A stretch of DNA of 64,000 nucleotides from Macrostomum hystrix (taxonomy: Eukaryota > Animalia > Platyhelminthes), in the NCBI GenBank assembly GCA_950097015.1, contig CATNEN010000007.1, forward strand, positions 3,348,001-3,412,000, in the 5' to 3' direction. Made by a program: the position numbers and the translations under genes. Of the stretch, positions 3,001 through 58,700 are shown piece by piece. A model generated the notes under the pieces. That model was given only the letters and a program-made list of their open reading frames with translations, was not told the DNA's origin and did not search any database. Positions within the stretch are counted from its first letter, which is position 1. Every line of letters starts with the position of its first letter.

Positions 3001-4454
3001 GGCCTTTTGCAGCAGGTCCCAATGCATCTTCTGGACTGGTTTCAGATAGATGAAAAAACCTTCTCAGTTTTGTTTTTCTCCAATTATTTTTAATAGAATT
3101 GCAATTTTTGACGTTCGAGATACTACTTATAGTAGGCGAATAGAAAACATTTTTTAATATGAAAACATTTTAATTTAAATAAATTTAATAAAAATAAAGC
3201 AATTTCCATTGCGAGCAGGCCGTCGGAAGAAGCCAGTTGAGCGGCCCGCCATCGAGCCGGTGATTCGCAAGCTGCACCTGGCCGACAACGGCATCGACCA
3301 GGTCGGCAGGGGCGCCAATTTTGTCTGCTTGAAATGCGTCATTCGGCTGGGAAAGTGAGTGCCACGGCCTGCCGGACTGTGTGCTCAATGCATTTTGGGG
3401 AATCTATCGGGAGATGAAGCTAGAAAGGAATCCCAAAAAACTTAAGGTAATCCCAACAAACTTAAGAGGAAATCCAAAAAAAAATTTAGGGTAATCCCTA
3501 AAACTTAAATGATATCCCAAAATGCTAAAAAAGAAACCAAGAGGGAATCCAAATAAACTTAAGGGAATCCAAACAAACTTGAGGGAATCCAAACAAACTT
3601 GAGGGAATCCAAACATACTTGAGGGAATCCCAACAAACTTAAGAGGAATCCAAAAAATCTTTAGGAGAAAAAAACACAGGGAAATCCCAACAAAGTTGAG
3701 GAAATCCCAAAAAATTTAAGGAAATCCCAACAAAGTTGAGGAAATCCCAACAAAGTTGAGGAAATCCCAACAAAGTTAAGGAAATCCCAACAAAGTTGAG
3801 AAAATCCCAAAAAGTTTAGCGAATCCTGACAAACTTGAGGGGAATCGCAAAAAACTTAAGTAGAATCCCAAAAATAGGAAATCCCAAAAAATTACATTTC
3901 CAAATTATGTTAAAATTACTTGAAATTTTTTGAAGTTTTCTTTGAAGCTGTCCTAAAAAACTGACTGAAACAATGAGTCCTATGCTACATATCAAACAGC
4001 GTCGTGAGCTGCTCCAAGACTCTGGAGGAGCTGGACCTGTGGGGAAACGACATTGGCGACGTCGGCGGTCGGCTTGTATTCGAGTTCCTGCAGGCCCGCA
4101 AAGAAGGTGAGCTTGGGAGAGAGAACGTCAGTTAAAAACCGGATGCACCTTCTGCACTTTCTACCCCTTCTACCCCTTCTAACCTTTCTACCCCCTCTAC
4201 CTTTTCTACCCCTTCTACCCCTTCTACCCTTTCTGCCCTTTCTACCCGGTTTACCCTTTCTACCCCTTTCTACCCCTCTGCCCCTTCTTCTGACCCATAT
4301 TTCCATCATCGGTTCCCTTTCAGCCAAGCTGCCCTCGATGTCGCTGCGTGTTGGACCACGAATGAACTCGGAGACATTCTCCAACATTCAGAAGCTCGGC
4401 TCCGGCCTCAAGAAGAGGAAGCGAGCCAGACGGGGCCGCAAGAAGAAGAAGTGA
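1..4454 (+). CDS. RNI-like leucine-rich-repeat protein, 3' part (5' end outside window), with (KKGG)n and a basic C-terminal tail
   Basis: Exons 1-158, 231-371, 465-613, 1246-1293, 1578-1706, 3219-3354, 4000-4106 and 4324-4454 have GT-AG boundaries and consistent phases. The translation shows LRR motifs: LTKLELLDC, LTEIVLDFNEFSDEGCKEL, LKTLSLCYCDL, DLFLDGNELEAEG, IRKLHLADNGI, LEELDLWGNDIGDVGG. It ends GLKKRKRARRGRKKKK*. Confidence 0.85.
1820..2505. repeat. Intronic minisatellite, 17-19 bp units (cctgacaccctgaaagt / cctgacactctaaaaac)
   Basis: Tandem copies visible directly, within an LRR gene intron. Confidence 0.95.
3420..3880. repeat. Degenerate ~20-bp minisatellite (gggaatccaaacaaacttga)
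   Basis: Tandem copies visible directly, within an LRR gene intron. Confidence 0.85.
4160..4290. repeat. 9-bp pyrimidine-rich repeat (ttctacccc)
   Basis: Tandem copies in the last LRR intron. Confidence 0.9.
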
Positions 4455-4739
4455 CCAATGAGTATCGCAGAACCTTCTTGGTAGCCTTGGTTGTCACACT
4501 TTCCTTTAGAATATCATTTGAGAATATTACTAGAATATTACTTGAGTCCACCTATTAACTGCTATTCTATGTACGTAATTTACTGACGCAAACGTTTATG
4601 TAAAGATAATACTTCGAGCCGTGAAATTTAATTTTTCTGACCTCACATTCCAAAGCAGCAGTACAACATTCATTATCAACCTATGCCGACCAAATCACAC
4701 CCCATCATCCACTACCATCCTCCTCCTTCTTGTCCATCT

Positions 4740-9403: not shown

Positions 9404-11694
9404 ATGACGGCGAATGAACTTGATAAGGTAGGTGATTTTTCTGTCCTGGCGGGGAAGTGAGGGTCATGCAGTCAGGTCACAGTGAGGGTCATGCAGTCAG
9501 GTCACAGTGAGGGTCATGCAGTCAGGTCACAGTGAGGGTCATGCAGTCAGGTCACAGTGAGGGTCATGCAGTCAGGTCACAGTGAGGGTCATGCAGTCAG
9601 GTCACAGTGAGGGTCATGCAGTCAGGTCACAGTGAGGGTCATGCAGTAATAAGTCACAGTGAGGGTCATGCAGTCAGGTCACAGTGGGGGTCATGCAGTC
9701 AGGTTACAGTGAGGGTCATGCAGTCGTACGTCCTAGTGAGGCTCATGCAGTTAGGTCATAGTGAGGCTCATGCAGTTAGGTCATAGTGAGGCTCATGCAG
9801 TTAGGTCATAGTGAGGCTCATGCAGTTAGGTCATAGTGAGGCTCATGCAGTTAGGTCACAGTGAGGGTCATGCAGTCAGGTCACAGTGAGGGTCATGCAG
9901 TCAGGTCACAGTGAGGGTCATGCAGTAATAAGTCACAGTGAGGGTCATGCAGTCAGGTTACAGTGAGGGTCATGCAGTCAGGTTACAGTGAGGGTCATGC
10001 AGTCAGGTCACAGTGAGGGTCATGCAGTAATAAGTCACAGTGAGGGTCATGCAGTCAGGTTACAGTGAGGGTCATGCAGTCGTACGTCATAGTGAGGCTC
10101 ATGCAGTTATGTCATAGTGAGGCTCATGCAGTTAGGTCATAGTGAGGCTCATGCAGTTAGGTCATAGTGAGGCTCATGCAGTTATGTCATAGTGAGGCTC
10201 ATGCAGTTAGGTCATAGTGAGGCTCATGCAGTTAGGTCATAGTGAGGCTCATGCAGTTAGGTCATAGTGAGGCTCATGCAGTTAGGTCATAGTGAGGCTC
10301 ATGCAGTTAGGTCATAGTGAGGCTCATGCAGTTAGGTCATAGTGAGGCTCATGCAGTTAGGTCATAGTGAGGCTCATGCAGTTAGGTCATAGTGAGGCTC
10401 ATGCAGTTAGGTCATAGTGAGGCTCATGCAGTTAGGTCATAGTGAGGCTCATGCAGTCATTTACGCAGTCATTCGTAATTTTGAGATTTTCCTTTCTTTC
10501 AAAAGTAAGAAAGTGAAAAGTTTTATCTGAACTCAACCAGGAGAATCGCAAACGAGTGCTGCTGCTGCTGCTGTTGCTGTCAGTGCTTCTGCTGCCCTCG
10601 CTGATGCTAACATTAAAGCTGCTCTCGGTGCAGAGAAGCTCAGCTGTTGAGGAGCAGCGCAGAGAGCTGGCAGGCGAGTCACGTGACTCGGAGCAGCGCG
10701 CGTGGCTCGTCTGCAAGGAGCGCTCGAACCGCACTGCGGCTGAAAGATTCGGTCGGCTGTTTTCTGAACTGGATGAAATAGTGTACGCGAACCATGCCAA
10801 CCTCTCAGCCGCAGACATGTTTTTGCACATTTGCGATGAAAACATAATAAGAAAAAGTGCCTATCAGCTGTGTCCGACTGTCGCTGTACTGGAATCCAGG
10901 CCACACGAACTGCCGGCAGCACAGATTCAGTACAACTGCCATTGCAAAATGGTCGATACGATCATTAGGAACCAAGTCTATCGGGGCAGGTGCACCCAGG
11001 TGAGCCTGCATTAGGCTCAAATAGCCCCAACGCACTCTACCACCCTAAGCAGCACTGACCTTACTCCAGTCCTTCACACCAGATACAACCTCATTCCAGT
11101 CCTCCACCGCCACAGCCACCTCACTCCAGTCCTTTACACCCGCACCAACTTTACTGGGTCACTCCAGTCCTCCACAGCCTCAGCCATCTCGCTCCAATCG
11201 TCCACCGCACCACCCACCTCACTCCAGTCTTCTACATTCACAGCCATCTCGCTCCAATCGTCCACCGCACCACCCACCTCACTCCAGTCCTCTACATTCA
11301 CAGCCATCTCGCTCCAATTGTCCACCGCACCACCCACCTCACTCCAGTCCTCCACAGCCTCAGCCATCTCGCTCCAATCGTCCACCGCACCACCCACCTC
11401 ACTCCAGTCTTCTACATTCACAGCCATCTCGCTCCAATCGTCCACCGCACCACCCACCTCACTCCAGTCCTCTACATTCACAGCCATCTCGCTCCACTCG
11501 TCCACCGCAGCACCCACCTCACTCCAGTCCTCTTACTCCGCCGCCCGCAGGAAACCCAGCTGGTCAGAGTCGTCCGCCTTCACGCTGATTCAAATATGCA
11601 AAACAGGTGTCCTGCAGGCACCTCTGCATTCGTCGGCGAGTGGGTACAGATTTCGGTCAACAAGAGTTGCACTTTTAGCACATTCCATCCCTAG
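9404..11694 (+). CDS. Secreted or signal-anchored cystine-knot protein, IL-17/PTTH/trunk-like (208 aa)
   Basis: Exons 9404-9427, 10541-10999 and 11551-11694 (all phase 0, GT-AG). A Leu-rich hydrophobic N-terminus precedes RKSAYQLCPTVAVLESRPHELPAAQIQYNCHC...CTQETQLVRVVRL...C...EWVQISVNKSCTF, which follows the IL-17 pattern (CPW...P.R.P......C.C...VLRR..C...V..GCTC). The family call is by motif recognition only. Confidence 0.7.
9467..10455. repeat. 25-bp minisatellite (agtgagggtcatgcagtcaggtcac; variant agtgaggctcatgcagttaggtcat)
   Basis: About 40 tandem copies in intron 1 of the IL-17-like gene, with the two variants in blocks. Confidence 0.97.
11060..11530. repeat. 60-bp minisatellite, intron 2 of the IL-17-like gene
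   Basis: Tandem copies; the repetitive 20-aa period in the overlapping ORFs matches a 60-bp unit. Confidence 0.93.
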
Positions 11695-40759: not shown

Positions 40760-43700
40760 TTAATAAGCGCTGACCGAGCTGTACCAGTCGGCCTTAGCGG
40801 CATTGGCCGTGGCGGCTGCTGGCAAGGGCCGAGCGGACCTGTTGACAGCGTCGCGAAGCTCCTCCAGCTGGCTGGCTAGGCTGCGGACCAGATCGTTAGT
40901 CAGGCTCAGCTTCTCCTGTAGTTGGCGCAGCTCCGCGCTCTGCTGGTCGGCTCTGCCGCCACCTCCACCGTTGCCGCCGCCGCTGCTTCCGTCAGCTTCA
41001 GCGGCATTCATAGAAGCGGACTCTTCAACCTGACTGTCGGCGCCAAGAGCCATGGTTCGCATTCGCGGGAACCAGTCCAGATTTCTGGCCCGCATCATCT
41101 GGCTGACGTAGGACTCCGGACCGGTGAACTCCGTGGGATCCTTCACCCGGACTAGGATCACAAAGTACAAATAGTGCCACAGATTGTGGTCCCGTTGCAC
41201 GTGCTGCTCGAAGCTAACTTCCCGATTCTCGAACCTGTTCCTATTCAGGCCGCAGATGAAGCAGGTGTTGCGCAGGATCACTTCCTTCTCTTGCTTCTCC
41301 TGGCGCAGATCGGCGAAGGTGTCAATGATGACACCGAAGATTAGGTTCAGCACAATGATGATCACAATGAAGTAGAAGCAGAGGTCGTACAGAACGCGCA
41401 GCAGGAAGCGGCTCTCGGTCATGCTCGGTTTGCGCAACAAATCTCCAATGCCGCCGCCGTTGCGCAGGCCCTCGTTCAGTGTGGTCACAATGCACATGAT
41501 TAGCGAGTCGCAATGCCGCTCTTTGCCTCCGCCTCCATCGGCATCAGCAGGCGGCTTGGCGGCTTCTGCAGTAATCTTACCCGGATTACTCGCTGCTGGG
41601 TCAGCTTCCTCTTCTTTTTGGCCGTCTGTTTTCGTTGCGGAAGAATTGAAATTTGAAGAAGCAGACAGTTTGTTTGCGGTGGCGGCAGTGCCGTTCGGCA
41701 GGTTGGACACATTCAGCGCCAGCTGAAAATGTTTGCCTGGCTCGGCTGTGTCAACAGCGGCAGCCGGTTTGGCGGCTCCGGCCAGGCCCTGGATGAGGTT
41801 GTCGCCGAAGCTCAGCCGATTCAGGCCCTGCAAGGTGGCGGCGGCCAGGGTGAAAGCGGAGGCGGCAGCGGCGGCGGCGGACCCGTCGGCACCGGCGGCT
41901 GCAGCCTCGGATACGCCGGCAGCGGCTCCGAGGGCTGCGCCCGATGACGATGAGACGGCGGCGGCGGCGACCTCGAGGGCGTCCACTTCAACCAGGAAGT
42001 CGTCTTGAAAGAATAGGTAGCCAACTATGGAGAACAGGTAGATAAGAATGACAGCCAGCAGGGCCGTGAGCAGTATAGATTTGCCATTCTTGGTCACGGA
42101 TCGAATGACATTGAGCAGCATCTCCTCTCTATAGACCAGGTCCAGCAGCAGAACGCTGTAGAGAAACGGGTGCAGACAGAGGCCGCCTAGGCAGATCAGC
42201 AGGTAGGCGACGTGATAAAGAAAGTCGCCATCTAGTAATAAATCTTTCAGTGGCCGATTAAATAGGCCTCTATTGCCGCACAGTGAGACTATGAATACCA
42301 GCTTGTTGCCGATGTCTATGCAGCCGAGCAGCTGCAGCACGGGCCCAACGCTAGCGTAGAATATCAGGCGCATAATGACGCACAGAAAGAACGCTTTCAG
42401 GCTAGTCGGCCTAGGCCAGATCAGCAGCACCACCAGGCTGAGGAACACAGTCAGCCAGCTGAGGCCGGAGATGCTGCCGACATTGCTGACACCGCTGCCA
42501 GGGCCGAACGGGTACCAAACAGCAATGAGCAGATTCATCAGCACAATCAGATGGAATGACACGGAGCTCCACAGCTGCATCTGGCAGCTGACGCGGTACA
42601 GCAGTGGCTGACGACGGAGCTTCCGCTGCCAGACCATCTCTTCGTGCAGCTGGTCGATGCGGCTGACGAGGTCCGCTACCTGAGAGAGTTTAATTGTGCG
42701 GGAATTCGGGTCGCGGTTAGTTAGTCTGGATCCTTCCAACGTGAAAAAACAATCGTACTATCCTCATCCTACTCAAAACAAAAAGCGAACCTAGACCCTA
42801 TCCGACTCAAAATAAGAATCGAACCTGGGATCTTACCCAACTCAGAATAAGAATCGAACCTGGGATCCCACCCAACTCAAGATAAGAATCGAACATTAGA
42901 CCCCATGCTACTCAAAATAGGAATCGAACCTTAGACTCCATTCAACTCAAAACGAGAATCGAACCTTGGATCCCATCCTACTCAAAACAAGAATCGAACC
43001 TTAGATCCCTGCTCGTCCCGTTCGGCCGTGTGAAAGACGCGCCACTTTGTATCCTCGGTGAGGTACTCGCAGATTTCAGGAATGGGAAAGACAATCTTCT
43101 CCAGCGACCTGTCGGCTCGCACAATCTCAATCTGGGCCGTATGTCGACTATAATAGTCCAAGGCCTGGTCGGTGAAGCCTTCGCTGCTGCAGCCGACGGC
43201 GCGAAGAAGATCGGCCAGTTCGCGATTGTGGCTGGACAGCTGGTGGGCCAGGATGTAGATGTTGTGGCCGACCTCGCGCGGATTCATGATCTCGTCAGCT
43301 AGGTCGCTGCGCAACTGGATGTCATTAGTGATTCAAAATTTTGACTATGACATCATTCTAAATGTATAACCTGCTGAGAAAGTTTTTTCTTCAGGCACCT
43401 CAGTAATACAATCTTCTATTCCTTCAGGCACCTCAGTAATACAATCTTCTATTCCTTCAGGCACCTCAGTAATACAATCTTCTATTCCTTCAGGCACCTC
43501 AGTAATACAATCGTCTATTCCTTCAGGCACCTCAGTAATACAATCTTCTATTCCTTCAGGCACCTCAGTAATACAATCTTCTATTCCTTCAGGCACCTCA
43601 GTAATACAATCTTCTATTCCTTCAGGCACCTCAGTAATACAATCGTCTATTCCTTCATGCACCTCAGTAATACAATCGTCTATTCCTTCAGGCAGACAGG

Positions 43701-46700
43701 CACCTCAGTATTACAACCATCTATTCCTTCAGGCACCTCAGTATTACAACCATCTATTCCTTCAGGCACCTCAGTATTACAACCATCTGTTGCTTCAGGC
43801 ACCTCAGTATTACAACCATCTGTTGCTTCAGGCACCTCAGTATTACAACCATCTGTTGCTTCAGGCACCTCAGTAGTACAACCATCTATTCCTTCAGGCA
43901 CCTCAGTATTACAACCATCTATTCCTTCAGGCACCTCAGTATTACAACCATCTGTTGCTTCAGGCACCTCAGTATTACAACCATCTGTTGCTTCAGGCAC
44001 CTCAGTAGTACAACCATCTGTTGCTTCAGGCACCTCAGTATTACATCCATCTATTCCATCAGGCACCTCAGTATTACAACCATCTATTCCTTCAGGCACC
44101 TCAGTATTACAACCATCTGTTGCTTCAGGCATCAGGCACCTCAGTATTACAACCATCTGTTCCTTCAGGCACCTCAGTAATACAACCAATCTGTTCCTTC
44201 AGGCACCTCATTGCTATTCTGATCAACACGAATATATAATTTCTGAAAGTGATTCTCTCACATCCTGCTGCTGCTGCTGTGCCTTGCTATCCAGAAACGA
44301 GTCCTCATAATAAGCTGACTTGGCAATGTCAACCAGCTGTTTGACTGGGGCCATTGTGAACATGATTCTCTCCGCTGTTTCGCTGTCATTCCTAGACTCC
44401 ATGACCGCCAGCAGGGTCTTGGAGGCGTTGTTCTTCAACTCCAGCACAAGGTCCATGCGCTGCTCGCTCAGCGGCGAGATGTCGTTGAGAATGAGCGCAA
44501 TGATGATGTCGATGCCGTTGCTCTCGTGAAAGGCGATGCTTGATTGGTTGAGCTGGCAGGGACCCTGGCAGTACTCGGTAAGGCTGATCAGAGCCTGATT
44601 CACTAGGCCCACATTGGACTCATTAATATAGAGGCCCAGTAGGCCTAGGCCGCCAGTAGTGGAGCCACAGATGCAGTCAAGAAACTGCAGGGTCTGGCTG
44701 ACCAGGTTGTAGTTGGTCTTGCCGCCCTGCGAGAGGTTTTTTGTAAATATTTATGTAGGTTAGAGACACGATAGGGTAGGATAGAGACTTGATGATTTAG
44801 GATAGAGACTTGATGATTTTGGATAGAGACTTGATGATTTAGGATAGAGACTTGATGATTTAGGATAGAGACTTGATGATTTTGGATAGAGACTTGATGA
44901 TTTAGGATAGAGACTTGATGATTTAGGATAGAGACTTGATGATTTAGGATAGAGACTTGATGATTTTGGATAGAGACTTGATGATTTAGGATAGAGACTT
45001 GATGATTTTGGATACAGACTTGATGATTTTGGATAGAGACTTGATGATTTAGGATAGAGACTTGATGATTTAGGATAGAGACTTGATGATTTAGGATAGA
45101 GACTTGATGATTTTGGATAGAGACTTGATGATTTAGGATAGAGACTTGATGATTTTGGATACAGACTTGATGATTTAGGATAGAGACTTGATGATTTAGG
45201 ATAGAGACTTGATGATTTTGGATAGAGACTTGATGATTTAGGATAGAGACTTGATGATTTTGGATACAGACTTGATGATTTTGGATAGAGACTTGATGAT
45301 TTAGGATACAGACTTGATGATTTTGGATAGAGACTTGATGATTTAGGATAGACTAGAATATGTAGGGTAGAGACTTGATGATTATTACTAGGGTTCTAGG
45401 ATAGAGACTTAATGATTGATAGTGAAGAATTGATAGGGACATAATATAAACGAAGTTGTTGAACTTATAAAAAACACCTGAAATCGAAAGCGAGACTTGA
45501 AAATTTTAGGCTTAAAAAATCGTAAAAAAGAGCTCCGAGTTCAGTTCGAGAGTCGCATTTGAAACGCACCTGAGTGCGCAGGAAATTCTGCATCTCCAAG
45601 TTGTGATTCTCGCACAGCAGCTGCAGCAGTCTTAGAATCGGCTGCACCATGGCTAGCTCCGGACTGTCGCTATCCTGACCGCTGCCACCGCCGCTAGCCG
45701 ATGCTCCGCCTGCGCCGCCGCCAGTGCCGCGGCCATCTCGTTCGCTGGAGGCTGCAGCAGCGGCGGCCGCCGCGGTGCCACCGGCACCTCCGGCCGCGTC
45801 GCCCGAAGCGGACAGCAGGTCGGACATAGGCGGCTCTCGCTCGTCCTCATTCTTGATTTTGTGCTTGATAAAGTGCATGGCCTTAGACGTAGCCAAAGCG
45901 GCGTCGTCTAGTTCAGTCTTGAACTCCGGGCTCAGCTCCATCAGCAGGCGTTGTCGATGATGCTCGGCGTCCGGATCGTCGGAACCGGCGAAGTAGTTCG
46001 CAGCAGAGCCGTTGGTCAAAGATCGATCATCTGGTTTAGCCGCCTTCGAAGCTTCCCCGGCGGCTGACGTGGCCAAAGTGCTGCTGTTGATGCGCACTGA
46101 AGCCATGGCCTTGCTTAGCAGGTCGTGCAACAACTTCACAAACTTCTCCGAGCGCTCTTCGTCTCTGAGGCGCGCCAGCACGGACGCCTGCACGCCGGTG
46201 TTGCCGCCTTCCAGCAGAGCGATCCCCAATTCAACAGCTTCGAGTAGGATGCGCTGGTTTGGCCGCTTGATGATTATGTCAACAACTAGATTAGAGGCGC
46301 CCTCCTTGTCCAGGAAGGACTGTTAAACAAGAAATGTATCGCATTTTAGACAGAAAGCAGTTCAATGCCATACCGGGTACAAAAACTCAATAATTTACCT
46401 GCACGTCATGAAGCGACATGCTAGCCCGGGACTGAAGCACGCTTCGCTGCTGCTGCTGCTGTTGCTGCTCATTAGAAGAGGCGCCAGGAGAGGCGGGAGT
46501 GGCTGCGGCGGCCATTTCCGTTGGCCAATTAATTCTGTGCACCTCTCGATTAGAGAAGTAGCGGACTAGAAGATTCCAGCGCAGCATCTCGCCCTTCTCA
46601 CTATAATTGGCATTCATCAGCATCATCTCGCGCAGTGTCTGCATCACTTTCACGCACAGATTCTCTTCTTTGTCTTCTAGTAGAGGCTCGGTGTGTTTAA

Positions 46701-49700
46701 TTAGGCGCGATATGAAGCCGCCGCGTTCGCAATTTCTGCGAACCTCTGAGTCAGGAGTGAACAGCAGCTCCGGATTGTGCAGCACATCGACCAAAACTGA
46801 GAACTCCGCCTTCACCAGCGGCTTCAACTGCTCCTCCAGTAGCTGAACAACTGACTGCCATTTGGACACGATCAGTCGGGTGCGGTCCTTGTTAGTCTGT
46901 TCCGCCGAGCGTTGAGCCATGCCAATTGCTGAGCTCTTCTTTCGCGATCTGAGCCAAGTTTGGGCCTGGCGAAATGTCAATGCGTTTGCTTTATATTATC
47001 TGCCTACGAGCTTTATACATTCTAACATGTTCTAGAGATGTGTTCTAGTGATGTGTTCTAGTGATTTGTTCTAGAGATGTGTTCTAGTGATGTGTTCTAG
47101 TGATTTGTTCTAGAGATGTGTTCTAGTGATGTGTTCTAGAGATGTGTTCTAGTGATTTGTTCTAGAGATGTGTTCTAGTGATGTGTTCTATAGATGTGTT
47201 CTAGAGATGTGTTCTAGTGATGTGTTCTAGAGATGTGTTCTATAGATGTGTTCTAGAGATGTGTTCTATAGATGTGTTCTAGAGATGTGTTCTAGAGATG
47301 TGTTCTAGTGATGTGTTCTAGAGATGTGTTCTAGAGATGAGTTCTAGTGATGTGTTCTATAGATGTGTTCTAGAGATGTGTTCCAGTGATGTGTTCTAGA
47401 GATGTGTTCTATAGATGTGTTCTAGAGATGTGTTCTAGTGATGTGTTCTAGAGATGTGTTCTAGAGATGTGTTCTAGAGATGTGTTCTAGTGATGTGTTC
47501 TAGAGATGTGTTCTAGAGATGTGTTCTAGAGATGTGTTCTAGTGATGTGTTCTAGAGATGTGTTCTAGAGATGTGTTCTAGAGATGTGTTCTAGTGATGT
47601 GTTCTATAGATGTGTTCTAGAGATGTGTTCCAGTGATGTGTTCTAGAGATGTGTTCTATAGATGTGTTCTAGAGATGTGTTCTAGAGATGTGTTCTAGTG
47701 ATGTGTTCTAGAGATGTGTTCTAGAGATGTGTTCTAGAGATGTGTTCTAGTGATGTGTTCTAGAGATGTGTTCTAGAGATGTGTTCTAGAGATGTGTTCT
47801 AGTGATGTGTTCTAGTGATGTGTTCTAGAGATGTGTTCTAGAGATGTGTTCTAGTGATGTGTTCTAGAGATGTGTTCTAGAGATGTGTTCTAGAGATGTG
47901 TTCTAGAGATGTGTTTTAGAGATTTGTTCTAGAGATTTGTTCTAGAGATGCGTTCTAGAGATGTGTTTTAGAAATATGTTGCTGAAATGCTCACCTGTTT
48001 GAGCACAGTGTCAGTCTTCTGAACCAGAGCAGACACCAAAGATTCCAAATCCACCGGAATAGCCACAGCCCGATTCTTTGCAATGTCAAACAGAGCCCTG
48101 ATGGCCTTCTCAACTCGACGCTTCTGACCGCCGGAGAGCCAGTCGCACTGGGAGGCCAGCTTGTAGAATGACCAGAGCAGACGGACAAAAGTCTCCTGTT
48201 TGGAGCGCTGCTTCTCAATGGATGAGCTCTGCTCACTGTAAGGCGAATTGAAGAATGTTGTAACCACACTGGTGACTGTCTCAGTTACGTAGTGCTCCAA
48301 AGCTTTGTCGGCGTGAGCTCGATCGTGAGTACTGCTGCAGACCAGGGCCATGTCAACCAGGAAGTTGTCGAATAGAGTCCACATGTGGGCGCTGGTGTAG
48401 ATCTCTTTCATCTCAATCTCCGTGTCGATGTAGCAGTGATTCAGAAAGTGCACGTAGGCGTCCTTCACCTGGCGCGGTTGGGGAGGAGAATGATGGCGAA
48501 AATATCGCTGTGGTACTGCGGGGAATCACTTTATCGAATCTGCCTTATCCCCTGTCTCCCTGTTGGATTGTGCTATGTCGACCAGTCTCCGTGCCACCCG
48601 CCAATCCGGTTCCTCCCGCGTTTGGTGGTCAAACTGAATTGGTGGGCTGTGGGCAATGGCACATCATTTGGTGACACTAAGACCTGCAGACAACGAGGAG
48701 GCAATTCTGTATGTTTCGCTGACTCCTGAGCACACACGCACACAGATACTGTACGCTGGCACAGGGTGTGTATAACTGCCCCAACTTTCTCATCGTCAGG
48801 CAGTGTACACTCTTACTGTGCCTTGGAGCTTGGCACTCAAGGGCGTGAATTGCACGAAAAGCCCCCCAAGCCTTCTCAAATGAATGAATGTGGCCTCGCC
48901 GTGGAATCGAGCTCGGGGACATTGGTGCGAGATGCAACCCCCGTATAAAACGGAATGGTCACAAAAAGGGGCTGTGACCGTTGTTGTGACTGTCATGGTC
49001 ACATGTTACCGTTAGTGACCACGTTTTGTGACCGCCATGGTCTCATGTTACCACTTGGTGTCCATAAAATTTGACCATTTGTCCGGGTCACCATGTGACC
49101 GTTCACTGTGACCGTATTTTGTGACCGTTATGTTCAGGGTCACCATGTGACCGTTCACTGTGACCATATTTTGTGACCGTTATGTTCAGGGTCACCATGT
49201 GACCGTTCACTGTGACCGTATTTTGTGACCGTTATGTTCAGGGTCACCATGTGACCGTTCACTGTGACCATATTTTGTGACCGTTATGTTCAGGGTCACC
49301 ATGTGACCGTTCACTGTGACCGTATTTTGTGACCGTTATGTTCAGGGTCACCATGTGACCGTTCACTGTGACCGTATTTTGTGACAATACCTTCTACTTG
49401 CTCCCAGCTTGTCCTTTAAATATTAGACTTTAAATAGGACTCAATAAACTGCCACGACTTCTTTATTTCGGAATGTGGCGTTACGCACATGTTTGTTGTC
49501 AGCATTGCATGAATTTATTCTGAAAAGACCGAGAAATTTTAGATAGTACACGATTTTAGGTACAGCACACATTTTGTTTGAATTCAGTATATAGTGAGAA
49601 GTAGCAATAAGTTTTATTTCCATCATTTTCAGCTCATTTATAGATCATGGACGAAGAATTGGTGCCGGCGGCTGAGCTACGCAGCGCCGTGATGAATCGT

Positions 49701-52700
49701 TTACGGTAGCGGCGCTTTCGAGAGCGTAGCAACGTGCAGCTTTTGCTGCAAAGGCGGCAACAATGGTTGCAGAATGGCACCATTACAGTTGGCGCCGTCG
49801 TAAAGAATCCACGGACGAATCGTGGTAGTAAACGCAATCATCCGGGCGACGACTCTGAAAGCGAATCTGCCAGCGAAGCCGCCAGCGAAGCCGCCAGCGA
49901 ATCTGCCAGCGAAGCCGCCAGCGAAGCCGCCAGCGAAGCCGCCAGCGAAGCCGCCAGCGAATCTGACAGCGAAGCCGCCAGCGAAGCCGCCAGCGAAGCC
50001 GCCAGCGAAGCCGCCAGCGAATCTGACAGCGAAGCCGCCAGCGAAGCCGCCAGCGAAGCCGCCAGCGAATCTGACAGCGAAGCCGCCAGCGAAGCCGCCA
50101 GCGAGCCGCCAGCGAATCTGACAGCGAAGCCGCTAGCGAAGCCGCCAGCGCAGCTGCCGACGACTATGCCGACTTCAACGATGACGGCGACGGCGACGGC
50201 GACGATAACAATTCAAACGCTGCTAAACTGCATGACTTCTGCCAGCTGGCCGCATATCGTGACGCAACTGTGTCCTATGCTACAATTGGCACTCTAGCTC
50301 AGTGTGCAACTGGTGCGCACATCCAATTTGAGTTCGGTCGCGTGGAGTCGATTCGCGTTGCAAACGGCACCGCCAAATTGGTTGTGCGTCGGTTATTGAC
50401 CGAGAAGCATGTCGAGCCACGTGACAATCCGCTTTACTGCTTCTCGGGACGGCGCCTGCTGGGCGGTTGTGCGCTAGCGCACGTACGTCGATTGCAACGA
50501 AGCCCATTCGAGGAGGTGTCCAAGTTCTATTTCGATTTGGACCCTGTTGTCACCATCGTCAAGGCCTGCGCCTTGTCGGACTCTCATGTGGCGTTTTTGC
50601 CGCATGAACAGTTTTCTTTCGCTGCGTAAGGGTGTTGTCTCCTGTCTGACAGTTGCTGTAGTGTTTATGAATGTAAGCCATTGAATTATGTCAGCCCAAG
50701 TTGTTCAACATTATTGCCTAAAACCTTTTTGGTTTGCTAGACTCGCTTTGGATCTCCTCGTCTACGTTTGTTATATATTATCTGTGTACGAGCGTATCTG
50801 CACTGTGTTTCATTGAATTTTATATTATCTGTGAAGAACTATAATTTTAAGCTGTACTTTTAAAAACAAATGCGCAAGCACAGTATATTTGGTAGGCCAT
50901 GCCGTGTGAGAAACACCTTCGTGCTACGAATTTTATTCGTAATTTGTAAATAATTGACGCTTTCCAGATTTTTTCGGGGCACTGCGGAATTCAGATATAG
51001 ACAGAAGGGTTTTGGCGGTCAAGTTGAAGTGCGGGCGATATACTCGTAGGAAACCCTTTTATACGAGCGTATTTAATTTTATCTATCGTTTCTGAAGGCT
51101 CTAGGAATTAACGTAAAAGTTTGCAAAGTTCCCACCCTTCACCCTCACATACCTTAGTCCTCTACTCCCTCAATTGCTGCATTACAGCAGCCTCTCCGAG
51201 CATTTTGAAAATGTCCGGCAACAAGCCTTCGGATTTTATTTCTAAAAATAAGTGGCTGTCCAAGTCACCTTCTGACCAGGAGATGGTTCGGAAGTCAGTG
51301 GGTCGGCCTTACCAGCCCAGACCGCCTTCTGGTTTCCAGCTAGAGTGTCAGGAGGCTGCTAAGAAGATGCAGCGGGAAATAGACAAGGAGCGCGAAATGA
51401 TTCGGATCGCAGGTGAGGCTGCCTCGCGACAATGCGCCAAACCATTTCATGGACCTTGGCTTTCCAAGCGCACTCCGGTGACCAGGGGCATTCCGTTATT
51501 TCCGGCCGATCTAAGTAGTGCCTCTGGAACGTCTACTTCCTACGGGACCCCGGCGGCTCTGTCGGAGAACCCGGTGACTCTGCCGGAGAACCCGGTGACT
51601 CTGCCGGAGAACCCGGTGACTCTGCCGGAGAACCCGGTGACTCTGCCGGAGAACCCGGTGACTCTGCCGGAGACCTCGGCGACGCAGGAGGATGATTTGC
51701 AGCGCATTAAGAAGGACCTGCAAGATAGATGCGCCGCCGCTCTTATGCGTGCGGAAAAAGAATTGGAAGAAGCAGGCTTGCTGCTTGATGAGCTGAACGA
51801 ATACAGTCGCCCTCCATCGCCAATATTTGAGTAATACAGCATTTTCAAGCTAGTAGAAAGTGCATGGAAGTAAATAATCGAATCAGAAGTAGAGAATAAT
51901 TCTAATAATTCTAATAGTTGTAATAATAATACCAACCTCAGAGCAAGAATGTTAGCAACAGCTCAATCAAGAAATTGAAGAGTAGTTAGAAAGTAAAGAT
52001 TAATTTCCTTATAGAGAAAGCTGTAGCATTTTGTCAAAATCGAAAGTAAAAAATATTAATCTGAAAGTATTCGACTTACTTTCCTGTAAAAATATGGTTC
52101 CTGTAATTTTATGACAAGACACATTAACACTCCAAGCTACTAATTGTAGCTTAAACAGACAAACGTGTACCACGCAGCCTGTAAAACTATGAAAACCTGC
52201 AATTTTATGGAAATCGTAATAATGTGTTAAATATCGATTCCCACAAAAGTATGCATAATTTTTCACGGGCCAAAAACTATGTTTCGTTGTCAAATTTTCT
52301 ATCCAATGAGGACAGTTTTCAGTCTTTTTCTGCACTTCTATAATAATTGTGTAATATTGGTAGTTCCCAGCGCACCGCCCAAATAAACAGGCCAGACCAT
52401 TCATTACGAGTACTGCTATTGTCATTGATGAGGCTTGTGTGCTTTTTCTGATCTCTTTCTCTTGATGGACTTAATTTTTTTTAACTAATTTTACGAATTG
52501 CATTTTTCAAATAGTTTTTCAGATAAGAGGTATTCGCAGGTCTCCAATTGCCTACCAGAAACCAATAAATCAATCAGTCATTGTTGGTCCCAGATCTCTC
52601 TGCGACCTAGATCACTTTGTTCCAGGCTTATCTGCTTCCATGCCCCATCCAGCTGAGAAATGATCTGAGAGAGAGGGGGAGTACTAACCAATTTCTCATG

Positions 52701-55700
52701 CATCTGTACCACTTTTGCAGAAACGTCATTAAAAAGGAATGGATGCGAAAAAATTGCGGAAGAGTACCGCAACGGAACAAAAGTCTTCTTCAAAGAATGC
52801 ATCGAATACAATGAAAAAGCACGTAGCTTTTAGGGCCCCGATAAGAAAGCGCAAACCCGCCTCTGCCACTGCTGGCGCTTCTGCCGCGTCTGAAGGTGGC
52901 GGTGCTGTCGCCGCTGACGCCTCTGCCACTGCTGACGCTTCTGCCGCGACTGAAGGTGGCGATGCTGCCGCCGCTGACGCCTCTGCCACTGCTGGCGCTT
53001 CTGCCGCGACTGAAGGTGGCGGTGCTGCCGCCGCTGACGCCTCTGTCACTGCTGGCGCTTCTGCCGCGACTAAAAATGGAGCTGCTGCCGCCCCTGCCGG
53101 TCCTGGCACCTCTGCCACTGGCGCGTCTGCCACTGCTGGTAAGAAGGTCTCGGGTGGCCCTACAGCATGCCGCTACTGGGTATTCGAATACGCGCCGGAA
53201 GACGGCGGTCAGCTTGGCATCTACGCCGACAAGTGCATCGTTACTGACGGCTCAGTCGACCCAAGCCGACTGTCAGTGGACGACGAGGTCACCATAAAAC
53301 CAGGAAAGACCTCCAGCGGCAAGGCCTACCGCGTGCGTGTATGCAAAGGGCCATACCGCACAAAGGCGGCTGCAGAGGCTGGTGCCAGTGCCTGTCAAGC
53401 GGTGCAGAGGCCGGCAGGTATCAACCTTCCTAACAGCTGCACCACCTGCCAGGCGCTCCGGCAGGAGGTTTTGAACCTCTGGACAGCAGCAGAGTTAGCG
53501 CAGCAGACTGCCGACGGCTACAGAGAAAGCCAGGGACGGCAGATCGAAGAATTGAACCACCGGCTTGACGATGCTGAATATAAGCGGACTGCGTATAAGG
53601 AAAAATGGGAAGCCGCCGTCATCAGAATCCGTGAGCTGCAGTGTGAGCTGGAGCATGCCCAGAGCGGGGTCGAACATTCGAGGTCGGGAGAAGGCGGTGC
53701 TGTTGCTAAGTACACCGTGGTGCTGCAGGACGCCGTGTTTTCTGCCATTGAGGTACTACAACGCGCAATTTCTACCGGCATCAGTGGCATGGATGTCACG
53801 GTTGAAGACAGTACTGGCGTGCTAGGCAGCAGTACTGCTGGCAGCGCTTCTGCCGCGGCATCTGTTGGCGGCGTCTCTGCCGCGGCGTCTGTTCCGTTGC
53901 TGGACGATAGAGAACTTCGCGCCCAGATCCAATTGGCGTCAGCAAAGCAGCAGAAGCGTGCACCCGAGACAAGGGCTTTGACAGCGCGCTGCCCCGACGT
54001 CGTTGTGTCGGCCGCCGACTATGAACAGATCAAGCGTGCGGTGTCTGTCTATGTGAAGGGAGGTTTCAGCAGTACAGACGGCGATAAAATGCTCCGGACC
54101 CTGTACCGAGCAGTCTTCTCAACCGAGGAGCTAACGACCCGTTCCTACACCGGCCGCAAGACAAAAAAGGATGGTCCGCCGCCGAAGCCGGAAGTATCTA
54201 AGAAGAAAAAGTTCGCCATTAAGGCTTTTATAAGTGGGCTAAAGTTCCCTGAGGAATTTCCGAAGAAGTCCTATGCCACGATTTTCAAGCGCACTGCCTT
54301 CTGTGCTGCCCGAAAATTGAAGTCACCACTCAAAGTGACACCCAGCGGTCGCACTGGAAGGAACAAGGGCGGAAGGAAGGAAGCCGGTGATGAAGAAGGC
54401 GGCGGTGACCTTGACAGAGCCAAGGAACTTGACCTTGACGGCGGTGACGTTGACGCCAAGGAGGACGACGACAGTGGCGACGACGACGAAGCCGCAGCCT
54501 CTAGCGACTCTTCCGGCAACCCATCAGCGGAGGCGAAGTAGAGACTGAAATTAAGCCATTTGAACATTATTATTTTTCAGTTTTTTTGTGACGGATCACT
54601 AAACTAAGTGCGAAATGCACTACAATTGTATGCCAAATTATATTATGTTTTAATGACAATATTATGTTTTTTCTTAATAGTTACTGGCTATGGCCTTCCT
54701 TGGACTGGCTTTGGTGTGCAGAAAATTATGAAGCATGACACGGCCAACAATAGTTGCTGAACATAGCAAGACAAGTGATGCAAAGTGTCCAGTGAAAGCT
54801 GGCTGGAAAGCAGGTAGTGCCAGTAACTAATTACACCTTGTACCTTTATATGTTTCCTAAAATTGCTTATAACCATCGATACCAATATTTACATATAAAA
54901 AGTTATGGCATTTGATGCGCGGGCAGTTTGCCCATACAAATACAGCGACTTTTTACTAGCTATATTTTACTGGCTATTTTTGCTACTGCCACTACTGCCT
55001 TTTTATCAATATAAAGAAAGTCATGGCATTTTACATTTGATATAATTCATAATAAATATTAAGTATATTCAGATGTATAGATTTTTTTCTTGTTACTATT
55101 TTCTGGTGCTACTGCCAGTCACACAACGGACACACAGAATGGTCACACAAAATATGGTCACAGTGAACGGTCACATGGTGACCCTGAACATAACGGTCAC
55201 AAAATATGGTCACAGTGAACGGTCACATGGTGAACCTGAACATAACGGTCACAAAATATGGTCACAGTGAACGGTCACATGGTGACCCTGAACATAACGG
55301 TCACAAAATATGGTCACAGTGAACGGTCACATGGTGACCCTGAACATAACGGTCACAAAATATGGTCACAGTGAACGGTCACATGGTGAACCTGAACATA
55401 ACGGTCACAAAATATGGTCACAGTGAACGGTCACATGGTGACCCTGAACATAACGGTCACAAAATATGGTCACAGTGAACGGTCACATGGTGAACCTGAA
55501 CATAACGGTCACAAAATATGGTCACAGTGAACGGTCACATGGTGACCCTGAACATAACGGTCACAAAATATGGTCACAGTGAACGGTCACATGGTGACCC
55601 TGAACATAACGGTCACAAAATATGGTCACAGTGAACGGTCACATGGTGACCCTGAACATAACGGTCACAAAATATGGTCACAGTGAACGGTCACATGGTG

Positions 55701-58700
55701 AACCTGAACATAACGGTCACAAAATATGGTCACAGTGAACGGTCACATTGTGACCCTGAACATAACGGTCACAAAATATGGTCACAGTGAACGGTCACAT
55801 GGTGAACCTGAACATAACGGTCACAAAATATGGTCACAGTGAACGGTCACATGGTGACCCTGAACATAACGGTCACAAAATATGGTCACAGTGAACGGTC
55901 ACATGGTGACCCTGAACATAACGGTCACAAAATATGGTCACAGTGAACGGTCACATTGTGACCCTGAACATAACGGTCACAAAATATGGTCACAGTGAAC
56001 GGTCACATGGTGAACCTGAACATAACGGTCACAAAATATGGTCACAGTGAACGGTCACATGGTGAACCTGAACATAACGGTCACAAAATATGGTCACAGT
56101 GAACGGTCACATGGTGACCCTGAACATAACGGTCACAAAATATGGTCACAGTGAACGGTCACATGGTGACCCTGAACATAACGGTCACAAGTGGAACGGT
56201 CACAGCCCTTTTTTGTGACCATTTCGTTTTATACGGGACCGCGTTAGACCGTTCTGCCACTCTATTCTGCAATTCTGCCACCCCTGAGTGTGATAATCAA
56301 CCAGCGACTCACCTCTGGGCAGCAGAGTTCGTGAGTAACAATCTTGACTAGGTCATCCAGCGGCAGCAGGGAGTGGCACTTGATCTCAGTGTAGACATTC
56401 TTACCCTCAGTGCAGCTAGCCAATAGGCGCACCAGTTCAATGTGATAGCGCAACGGCCCGGAGACATCTACTCGGCTGCGCTCCGAGCACATTAGCCGGA
56501 GTAGCTCGTCGAATGCGGCGCCTTCGTTGAAGAACAGCAGGACTTCGTCGCCAACGGAGACTAGCTCGGACATGACCAGATCCTGGGAGCGCCTGATGTA
56601 CTGGCCGTCGCAGCGGACCAGGGTCTGCAAGAACTGCAGGTATGACACGTGGCGACCCTGCGACTCGATGGCCCGCACAAAGTGTTGAATCAGCCGGTCC
56701 GGAACCTCCAGGCAGAGGCGCTTGTTGTCGCGAAAGATGGCAGTGCAGGTCTCGGCTTCGTTCACGCCGTTGCCTAGAAAGGCGTCCAGCTGCTTGAAGA
56801 GCAGCGCCTGGTTGGCCGAATTGTTGAAGCAGAAGGCCTGCAGGAACTTGTGCGCCAGGCCGATCAGCTCCTTCATGCGAAGGTCCATCTGGGTTGGAAG
56901 GGCCGGCAAGCGGAGTAATTTTAGGGCGTCTGGAGACAAGGTCTTGTGGACCTCAGGATCTGGGGATAATTTATTGTGCGTCTGAGGATCTAAGGATAAC
57001 TAGGTGAGTTCGAGTATCTGGGGATAATTGGAGTTGAGTCCGAGGATATGGGGAATATTGGAGTTGAGTCCAAGGATCTGGGGATAATTGGAGTTGAGTC
57101 TGAGGATCTGGGGATAATTGGAGTTGAGTCTGAGGATCTGGGGATAATTTGAGATGAGTATGAGGATGTGGGGATAATTGTAGGTGAATACTAATATTTA
57201 GAGAAAATTGCAGGTGGCTTGAGAATCTACGGATAATCGTTGATGAACCTGGGATCTGAAGTGTGTCTACTGAGGATCCTGAGGATTTGGAAGAGGCACG
57301 CGTAAAGGTACAAACCTTTTTATCATAGGGTATCTGCAGGAGGTCCATCACGAACTTGTTAGCTCCCAGATTCTTAAGCAGCCGCTGCTGATGCTTATCA
57401 TTGGTGACGCTGCCATCCGGCTGTTTGGCGCAGCAAACTTCAGCCAGGCGTTGCAGAATCTCCTTCATGATGACGTAGTTGCGTCTGGAGTTTTCGTCAA
57501 TGTCCGGCCCGAGATTCAAATCGATGGCGGACTGGTCCGGCAGCAGCTTGACCGGCTTCTTGTTCGTGGCTGCTGTCGTCGGCGTAGAACCCGCTGCAGC
57601 CAGAGAGCCGGGCTGGCTAGTGGAGTCGCTGGCTGTCGCACCTTCTTCTCGAGGTTGCTGCTGCTGCTGCTGCGAACGGTTGCTGCTGTTGCGGCTTTTA
57701 TACACCTGTAAGCCCAGTGAACACGTTTAGACAATTCAATCTGCTACTTGATACCCTCCGATCTGTCAGTTGATACCCTCCGATCTGTCAGTTGATACCC
57801 TCCGATCTGTCAGTTGATACTCTCCGATCTGTCAGTAGATACCCTCCGATCTGTCAGTTGATACCCTCCGATCTGTCAGTTGATACCCTCCGATCTGTCA
57901 GTAGATACCCTCCGATCTGTCAGTTGATACCCTCCGATCTGTCAGTTGATACCCTCCGATGTGTCAGAGTCAAATCCAACCAGACCCAACTCACCCACAA
58001 TTCGGATTTCTCAACAAGCATTCGAATTTCGTCCAGATCCAGCCGAATCCGCTTGTAGGTGTTCACATCGTTGGTGGACACCAGCAGTTGCACCTGACGA
58101 AATGCTTGCAGAACTTCCTGACGCTGACTAAAATGGCGAAATAACAACTGCAGAGCGCCGCTCACCACCTGGGCATGATTGTGCATGATGAGGTACAGCA
58201 GCACTCTGAGGAACAGCCTGCCGCCCTGACCGTCCAGATCCAGCGCGTGCCCGGAGGCGGAGTCGGAGCTTTCGCAGAACATATCCTCAGCCTGGGCTGC
58301 GATGGCTTCAACGTCCAGATTGTGACTAGGCGGATTGCGAAAGCAGAGGCCGTAGCCATCGCTGTCATTGCCAGTGTAGATAGTGTCGAACTCGGATCTG
58401 AACACGCTCAGCAGATAGGTGATGCGGTAGTCCAGTCTTACATTGAGAATATAGTGCAGAATCTCCAAGATTCGCTGCTTAGTCTCCATCACAATGTTTT
58501 CCTCCTGTCGGCTGCGATTAATCTGACGGTTCTCTTCTGTGACGATGGCTTTCGGGCCCTGACCGCGACCCGGCTGCGTCTGCTGCTGTGACTGCTGCTG
58601 CTGCCCGTTGCCTGCTTCAGATCCGACAGGTTCCTTCTTTCCAGCGGCCGCAACGCCGCCCCCGCCAACCTTAGTCCCGATGGGAATGCAATCCAAAATA

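Follow-up and report, generated by a model that had tools for sequence, protein, structure and literature searches.

A CMC-type transposon with subterminal 9-mer arrays and a putative BEN-like end-binding protein in an IP3 receptor intron of Macrostomum hystrix

Introduction

An intron of the IP3 receptor (IP3R) gene of the flatworm Macrostomum hystrix holds a DNA transposon of 7,298 bp whose ends are built from large inverted repeat arrays and which carries genes of its own. The element is located at positions 48940-56237 of a stretch of 64,000 nucleotides (contig CATNEN010000007.1 of assembly GCA_950097015.1, positions 3,348,001 to 3,412,000 of the forward strand), which as a whole is called the window in the following. 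The locus raises the questions to which group of transposons the element belongs, why it contains no recognisable catalytic core, and what the arrays and the open reading frames (ORFs) between them contribute. An initial annotation of the window had described a possibly undescribed non-autonomous element with three cargo genes and with the arrays as a platform for a binding protein. The explanation that fits the data best, and that we consider likely, is that the window copy is a non-autonomous deletion derivative of a young family of the CMC (CACTA/Mirage/Chapaev) superfamily, in which the protein of the third reading frame, ORF3, acts as a putative end binder comparable to TnpA of the maize element En/Spm.

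Results

The ends of the element and its family

The element is bounded by terminal inverted repeats (TIRs) of 43 bp, which are complementary at 41 of 43 positions (95%), and is flanked by a 3-bp target site duplication (TSD; Table 1). Next to the TIRs two arrays of a 52-bp unit (98% matches) are arranged in inverted orientation to each other; the longest inverted arms comprise 304 nt with 97-98% identity. Three unit variants, present in 11, 7 and 2 copies, make up the right array. The hexamer GTGACC occurs 133 times in the window as compared with 22.5 expected copies (largest shuffle 40), and about 105 of the 133 copies lie within the ends of the element. Each 52-bp unit contains four copies of the motif, including the arrangement GGTCAC-CAT-GTGACC. 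According to the period-13 row of the tandem-repeat analysis the unit is composed of four 13-bp sub-repeats, three of them direct copies of TGTGACCGT plus spacer and one an inverted, degenerate copy. The same motif is also found inside each TIR, again as an inverted pair. The TIRs, the 3-bp TSD, the inverted arrays and the four motifs per unit with the palindrome across the unit junction had been reported in the initial annotation and were all confirmed on re-analysis. Scans of the region for tRNA genes and Rfam families were blank.

Related copies were searched in the genome assembly (42 contigs, 220 Mb). With the left 145 bp of the element as query 32 matches were obtained, eight of them at 99-100% identity. 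Thirteen loci were examined in detail, and ten copies with both ends were found. The ends of the family, which has at least ten members, are all CCCGTATAAAACGG (a shared terminus of 14 bp, in part with one base changed), and each two-ended copy begins and ends with CCCGT...ACGGG. Perfect 3-bp TSDs flank nine of the ten two-ended copies (TAG, CTA, CTA, TGA, GTG, TTA, CAG, TAT and ACC). A TWA consensus is absent from them, TTA being the only one of the ten that fits. The consistency of termini and TSD length, on which the initial annotation had staked its description, is therefore a property of the whole family. The copies are 0.4, 0.6, 1.7, 1.7, 2.0, 2.2, 2.8, 6.2, 7.3 and 9.0 kb long.

Several copies share rearrangements. 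Two internal deletion junctions are common to the copies on contigs C38 and C5, which have different flanks and different TSDs. Likewise, the copies on C2 and C1 contain a nested long interspersed nuclear element (LINE) at the same 13-bp site, again within different flanks. Because the copies are 98-99% identical to each other and share junctions or the nested LINE at different genomic positions, we infer that the family has moved recently and in trans.

The nested LINE, a retrotransposon without long terminal repeats, was found at L032:1323-5162 (C2) and in L037 (C1:17895307) with the same 13-bp duplication. In the C2 copy it has an open frame of 1,279 aa coding for an endonuclease, a reverse transcriptase and C-terminal zinc fingers. 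Transposon and retrotransposon appear to have moved as one unit. The 6.2-kb C2 copy, which had been considered as the autonomous partner, was ruled out, its 1,279-aa frame with reverse transcriptase and endonuclease belonging to the LINE.

The conserved part of the arrays

The number of array units differs widely among the near-identical copies, from 3 to 20 at the left end and from 1 to 19 at the right end, and the asymmetry flips from copy to copy. In copies other than that of the window 3-20 units were counted at the left end and 1-3 at the right. Judged from this variation, the large asymmetric array is an unstable feature of the window copy; the asymmetry that had been described before is present there, but it is specific to this copy and differs in the others.

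Diverged members of the family allow one to separate what varies from what is kept. A lineage at C1:8.38 Mb, whose transposase is about 60% and whose ORF3 is about 40% identical to those of the window family, has the ends CCCGTATAGAAAA; its TIR contains the inverted motif pair as well, and about 25 copies of ACGGTCACA follow beyond its ORF3. In a subfamily at C38:29.72 Mb units of 42 bp at one end and units of 12/13 bp at the other end contain the same core. From one subfamily to the next the length of the higher-order unit changes (52, 42, 24 or 37 bp) and the 9-mer core is kept. In this comparison of sequences the constant feature of the ends is the 9-mer TGTGACCGT and not the 52-bp unit. 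The ends of the diverged member at 29.72 Mb of C38, L013 (C38:29718111-29721202), have grown into arrays with 13 units of 42 bp and about 56 units of 12/13 bp, in which the core ACGGTCACA recurs; by its sequence it is close to a small satellite.

We considered whether the arrays could be a functionless satellite expansion of the ends, with only the 43-bp TIRs being relevant for transposition. Such an expansion would agree with the range of 1 to 20 units and the flipping asymmetry, and also with the interspersed arrangement of the unit variants, as slippage or unequal exchange would give. However, several motif copies are kept at both ends of every copy, and the conservation of the 9-mer core in units of different length suggests selection on the core. 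We therefore regard a purely passive origin of the arrays as improbable.

The transposase of the family

A copy of 9,015 bp at C11:1377488-1386502 (L031) carries a transposase in the form of three ORFs of 204, 547 and 158 aa, which together align to paralogues with one uninterrupted frame of 900-1,000 aa. Positions 50304/50305 of the window join the positions 1299 and 3194 of the C11 element, and window 50305-51620 corresponds to positions 3194-4500 of that element. What is absent from the window copy are positions 1300-3193 of the C11 element (about 1,894 bp), that is the whole catalytic core. By this alignment the window copy is a non-autonomous derivative with an internal deletion of 1.9 kb. 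Both termini of the transposase have left remnants next to the junction (Table 1); the frameshift of the N-terminal remnant is located within a 12-bp repeat coding for Ser, Glu and Ala (49860-50158). The initial annotation was correct in calling the window copy non-autonomous. Its statement that there is no DDE core holds for this copy but not for the family, which has a transposase on C11 whose core the deletion removed here. The autonomous partner that it expected to come out of a collection of family members was found in part: a transposase-bearing copy exists, but its transposase is itself broken.

An intact autonomous copy was not detected in the assembly, and no other copy of the family has a transposase. 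The next best genome match to the C11 transposase is 78% identical over a fragment and is broken as well. Between ORF2 and ORF3 the C11 copy contains a separate nested repeat of 737 bp without obvious TIRs (L031:5818-6554). This extra sequence was ruled out as a further exon, since it is a repeat of about 740 bp with at least five near-full-length copies elsewhere at 96-98% identity.

For the 547-aa core ORF at least 86 paralogous matches were obtained across the genome. In an alignment of 13 paralogues the blocks DGF, DAPxR, GC.xCY and RGHE are invariant, and a CxxC...C block upstream of the core is conserved; together these blocks presumably represent the CMC signature. For the searches the pieces of the transposase were used one by one, with no joining across the stop codon or the frameshift. 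Neighbours of the transposase in the protein atlas are clusters with PF02992 (Transposase_21) and DUF1258. A profile of the 13 paralogues gave 11,441 matches among 1.84 billion representative sequences, and 6 of the 10 matches that were scanned (E 1e-56 to 1e-76) pass the gathering score of PF02992, with weaker matches to Plavaka and DUF1258. The closest named relatives (E below 1e-150) are all from Macrostomum lignano, two others of that rank being unnamed metagenome proteins; the M. lignano relatives of the element's proteins show 49-65% identity. A PDB sequence search with the transposase core returned no relevant match. Because relatives of the transposase score above the Pfam threshold for Transposase_21, the family is placed by sequence homology in the CMC superfamily. 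The 3-bp TSD and the subterminal repeats inside short TIRs agree with the CMC-type membership that had been proposed initially.

A 3-bp TSD together with a two-protein architecture is also known from other superfamilies such as PIF/Harbinger, whose second ORF likewise encodes a DNA-binding protein. Yet it is PF02992, Plavaka or DUF1258 that is found in the transposase's relatives, and not DDE_Tnp_4, and the TSDs show no TWA consensus, which makes an assignment to such a superfamily extremely improbable.

ORF2 and ORF3

The three reading frames of the window copy had been described as cargo genes. Two of them, ORF2 and ORF3, are indeed intact accessory genes, whereas the first is no cargo but the broken N-terminal stump of the transposase. 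ORF2 and ORF3 are intact and in the same order in the C11 copy, too. Moreover, homologues of ORF3 are situated downstream of diverged transposases at C1:8.378-8.382 Mb, C38:33.675-33.679 Mb, C24:5.006-5.010 Mb, C7:13.229-13.234 Mb and C31:3.395-3.400 Mb, and homologues of ORF2 at C1:20.972-20.975 Mb and C3:7.054-7.056 Mb. A comparison of the coordinates gives a distance of 0.1-3 kb between the transposase (about 40-67% identity) and the ORF2-like or ORF3-like frame at these seven loci. Because the homologues are found just downstream of diverged transposases, ORF2 and ORF3 are, on the evidence of gene order, components of the element and not captured host genes.

The opposite view, in which ORF2 and ORF3 are host genes picked up by a Pack-type non-autonomous element, was implied by the cargo description. 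It could appeal to the missing transposase of the window copy and to the fact that BEN-domain proteins are common as host chromatin factors. It is very improbable, however, given that both genes accompany the transposase in the same order in the C11 copy, that their diverged homologues lie beside diverged transposases at the seven other loci, and that no stand-alone, host-like homologue was seen among the genome matches.

For ORF2 neither a family in the Pfam scan nor a neighbour in the protein atlas was found. The Pfam scans of ORF2 and ORF3 revealed no plant transposon family of the TnpA type and only a weak similarity to BEN. This similarity (PF10523) falls within a conserved C-terminal block and appears at the same place in three ORF3 homologues of 35-65% identity, with 13.0, 15.2 and 14.2 bits (cut-off 23.2) and E-values of 0.12, 0.026 and 0.05; the 65%-identical homologue from M. 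lignano is named 'BEN domain-containing' in UniRef. A profile search of PDB sequences with ORF3 gave no relevant match. The AlphaFold model of the whole of ORF3 from the single sequence was of low quality (pLDDT 44), with confidence in no part but the long coiled coil (aa 234-349); when four sequences were used for aa 400-560, the model reached pLDDT 61 and pTM 0.52. When the latter was compared with known structures by VIA-align, the top six rows were all BEN-DNA complexes (NACC1, Bsg25A, BANP, Insv and two entries of BEND6) with Z 5.3-6.8 and 90-106 aligned residues; the first non-BEN structure, an unrelated helical one, followed at Z 4.8. BEN-DNA complexes were also the best Foldseek matches (probabilities 0.63-0.72). 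Taken together, the sequence matches and the model of aa 400-560 make it quite likely that the C-terminus of ORF3 is a BEN-like domain with an all-helical fold; the Z values are middling for a helical domain. Ahead of the coiled coil a conserved region of about 70-80 aa (window 53174-53390, ORF3 aa ~146-217) also has matches in distant genes of the ORF3 type that neighbour other transposases (query 142-270).

Each of the three ATG codons is preceded at a distance of 14-23 nt by a pyrimidine tract and CAG (49630-49632, 51185-51187 and 52718-52720), and the sequence TACTAAC is found at 52682-52688, just upstream of the predicted acceptor of ORF3. A spliced leader is used in the genus Macrostomum. 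The predicted acceptors would fit a separate processing of each cistron, perhaps by spliced-leader trans-splicing. For a splicing of En/Spm style from the N-terminal transposase exon to ORF3 only a weak donor (GTGTCC) was found, and the 5' region of ORF3 lacks an acceptor that is in phase and has a pyrimidine tract. In M. lignano a protein of 616 aa, P0151, is predicted in which the ~145 N-terminal residues of the transposase are fused to the body of ORF3. P0151 may stem from a deletion derivative that was annotated as a gene, or may reflect an alternative splicing like that of En/Spm.

Table 1. Positions of the features of the transposon and its surroundings (window positions, if not stated otherwise)
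Feature	Position	Strand	Remarks
Left TSD copy (ACC)	48937-48939	none	triplet repeated after the right end
Left TIR, starts with CCCGTATAAAACGG, contains inverted GTGACC pair	48940-48982	+	same terminus in 10 copies
Left subterminal region, degenerate motif copies, left end only	48983-49084	+	99% identical in 8 copies
Left subterminal array, 5.8 x 52-bp unit, core TGTGACCGT	49085-49385	+	
Transposase N-terminus remnant	49647-50304	+	ATG 49647, in-frame TAG 49707-49709, frameshift in repeat; ends at deletion junction
Transposase C-terminus remnant, last ~108 codons and stop	50305-50629	+	aligns with C-termini of full-length paralogues
ORF2, 207 aa from first ATG, six 7-aa ENPVTLP repeats	51211-51834	+	21-bp array 51549-51673
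ORF3, 600 aa, intact	52739-54541	+	N-terminus of low complexity, conserved region of ~80 aa, coiled coil (aa 234-349), putative BEN-like domain at the C-terminus
Predicted BEN-like domain of ORF3, about aa 415-530	53981-54328	+	
Right subterminal array, 20.1 x 52-bp unit, inverted	55146-56190	-	
Right TIR	56195-56237	-	
Right TSD copy (ACC)	56238-56240	none	
Host IP3R intron holding the element	48469-56312	-	GT at 56312-56311; pyrimidine tract and CAG ending near 48470
Transposase 204-aa ORF in the C11 copy, intact counterpart of the N-terminus remnant	L031:1060-1674		

The insertion site

The host gene was identified as an IP3 receptor by its RIH and RIH_assoc domains and by its best PDB match, IP3R type 1 (E 2.7e-57). 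It is encoded on the minus strand and the ORFs of the element on the plus strand; the transposon is thus inserted in antisense orientation into an intron that without it would measure about 540 nt. On the minus strand the 5' splice site (56312/56313) precedes the element by 75 nt. Because the right flank (400 bp, including exon sequence) matches nowhere else in the genome, the host gene looks like the only copy of this IP3R gene in the assembly. An empty site for the element was not found in the genome, the right flank being unique and the left flank a high-copy repeat. The latter, at window 48641-48937, is an interspersed repeat of about 300 bp which ends 0-2 bp from the insertion point. Forty copies of it were scored at 81-84% identity among 2,710 first-look candidates, and it has no tRNA or Rfam match.

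It had been suggested that the inverted arrays could fold the IP3R pre-mRNA into about 300 bp of double-stranded RNA (dsRNA). The computed pairing of the two 304-nt arms supports this suggestion: a duplex of 295 bp with -586 kcal/mol is predicted, as compared with -98 and -88 kcal/mol for each arm alone. Provided that both arrays are transcribed, dsRNA could form in the pre-mRNA on thermodynamic grounds.

Two further tandem repeats were noted in the window. One, at 43657-44310 in or beside the IP3R gene region, has long open frames on both strands with units of the GTSVLQPS type. The other, at 9456-10197, consists of 29 copies of a 25-bp unit with a higher order of 102 bp; it contains GGTCAC by chance and is unrelated to the transposon unit.

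Discussion

The full-length form of the family would have comprised about 8.2 kb before later insertions, with three genes on one strand. The first would encode the transposase (about 900 aa), in which a CxxC zinc ribbon is combined with a DDE core of the Transposase_21 type, the second the small ORF2 protein and the third ORF3, a coiled-coil protein with a predicted C-terminal BEN-like DNA-binding domain; each would be expressed from its own predicted splice acceptor, possibly after trans-splicing of a spliced leader. The ends would consist of TIRs starting with CCC followed by the TGTGACCGT arrays, with the 9-mer also forming the inverted pair in the TIR. By analogy with the TnpA/TnpD pair of En/Spm, ORF3 would dimerise through its coiled coil, bind the 9-mers and gather both ends for the transposase. 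Since TIRs and arrays are retained in deletion derivatives like the window copy, these could be mobilised in trans.

In maize En/Spm TnpA and TnpD act together, and TnpA binds the subterminal repeats (PMC1636069). The family shares with En/Spm the transposase superfamily (by transitive homology), the 3-bp TSD, and short TIRs followed by arrays of a motif of roughly 12-13 bp in both orientations. It further shares a second element-encoded protein, which would be required besides the transposase, and abundant, dSpm-like internal-deletion derivatives which apparently are mobilised in trans. On the other hand, the termini are CCC...GGG and not CACTA; the partner, a coiled-coil and BEN-like protein, does not resemble TnpA; ORF2 is present as an additional, third gene; each gene seems to form a cistron with an acceptor of its own, where En/Spm has alternative splice forms of one unit; and the host is an animal. 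A CCC terminus has been reported for animal elements of the CACTA superfamily (PMC1636069). The element probably works like En/Spm, yet it differs from CACTA elements in the strict sense by its termini and by the lack of a TnpA homologue.

Among animal elements, SmTRC1 of Schistosoma mansoni, a 'TRC' element of Mirage-like type, resembles the family in its flatworm host, its Transposase_21-type transposase, the CCC start of its TIRs, its internal tandem repeats and its many truncated copies. SmTRC1 has, however, a 2-bp TSD and a 54-bp TIR, and a single ORF has been described (DeMarco et al. 2006; PMC1636069), whereas the window family has a 3-bp TSD, two extra genes and long subterminal arrays. 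Chapaev elements are likewise an animal CMC lineage, and the 3-bp TSD falls within their range of 3-4 bp; but their termini are invariably CAC...GTG, in contrast to the CCC...GGG found here, and Chapaev3 produces TWA TSDs (Kapitonov and Jurka 2007; Zhang et al. 2014; PMC4079192), a pattern that one of the ten TSDs found here fits. The C-terminus of ORF3 has the helix pattern and the conserved motifs of BEN factors such as Insv, Elba/Bsg25A, BANP, NACC1 and BEND6. These are transcription or chromatin factors of the host with other targets, whereas ORF3 is encoded by a transposon and TGTGACCGT would be its putative target.

Which protein recognises the 9-mer can be answered in two ways. The transposase itself could read the TGTGACCGT arrays with its N-terminal basic region or its zinc ribbon, leaving to ORF3 a role such as promoter control or anti-silencing. 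The motif lies within the TIR, where the transposase must bind; the transposase has the conserved CxxC...C block before its core; and P0151 of M. lignano fuses the transposase N-terminus to ORF3, so that targeting could be the task of the N-terminus that both have in common. What speaks against this is that the BEN domains whose structures have been solved recognise specific DNA sequences, that ORF3 and the motif have been retained jointly in a lineage whose ORF3 is only about 40% identical, and that in En/Spm a separate protein binds the subterminal repeats (PMC1636069). We consider recognition by the transposase unlikely and favour ORF3 as the protein that would bind TGTGACCGT, as TnpA does in maize. 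The binding platform that the initial annotation had seen in the arrays is plausible.

Several points speak against the explanation favoured here. The only transposase copy of the family, on C11, is broken by a TAG codon (L031:1672-1674) and by a frameshift near L031:3280-3345. Direct Pfam scans of the Macrostomum transposases and of the window ORFs gave nothing significant, and the CMC membership is based on transitive homology. The BEN assignment combines sub-threshold sequence scores and middling structural Z values for a model of modest confidence. Since 1 to 20 units are found among the copies, a large array is not required and may result from slippage. Finally, as set out above, the N-terminus of the transposase could be the reader of the 9-mer.

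Going further, one may ask whether an animal CMC lineage has exchanged a TnpA-type end binder for a coiled-coil BEN protein that reads TGTGACCGT, with three cistrons released by splice acceptors and possibly by trans-splicing. We put this forward tentatively, as a possibility to which we give somewhat less than even weight. In the literature searched no paper was found which pairs a BEN protein with a CMC transposase.

Taken by itself, the window copy is an ordinary CMC deletion derivative, and the result is mostly a clarifying one. For the host gene the insertion means an IP3R intron with three genes in antisense and with some 300 bp of sequence that could form dsRNA, and the locus lends itself to studying, in a natural setting, what intronic transposons do to a gene. 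For the family, the combination of a CACTA-type transposase, a BEN-like partner and a 9-mer array offers a testable pair of protein and site for end recognition in animal CMC elements. If a CMC lineage has indeed made the exchange considered above, transposons would keep a stock of DNA binders of the BEN type along with target arrays to match, and would be a plausible source of host BEN transcription factors together with ready-made clusters of their binding sites.

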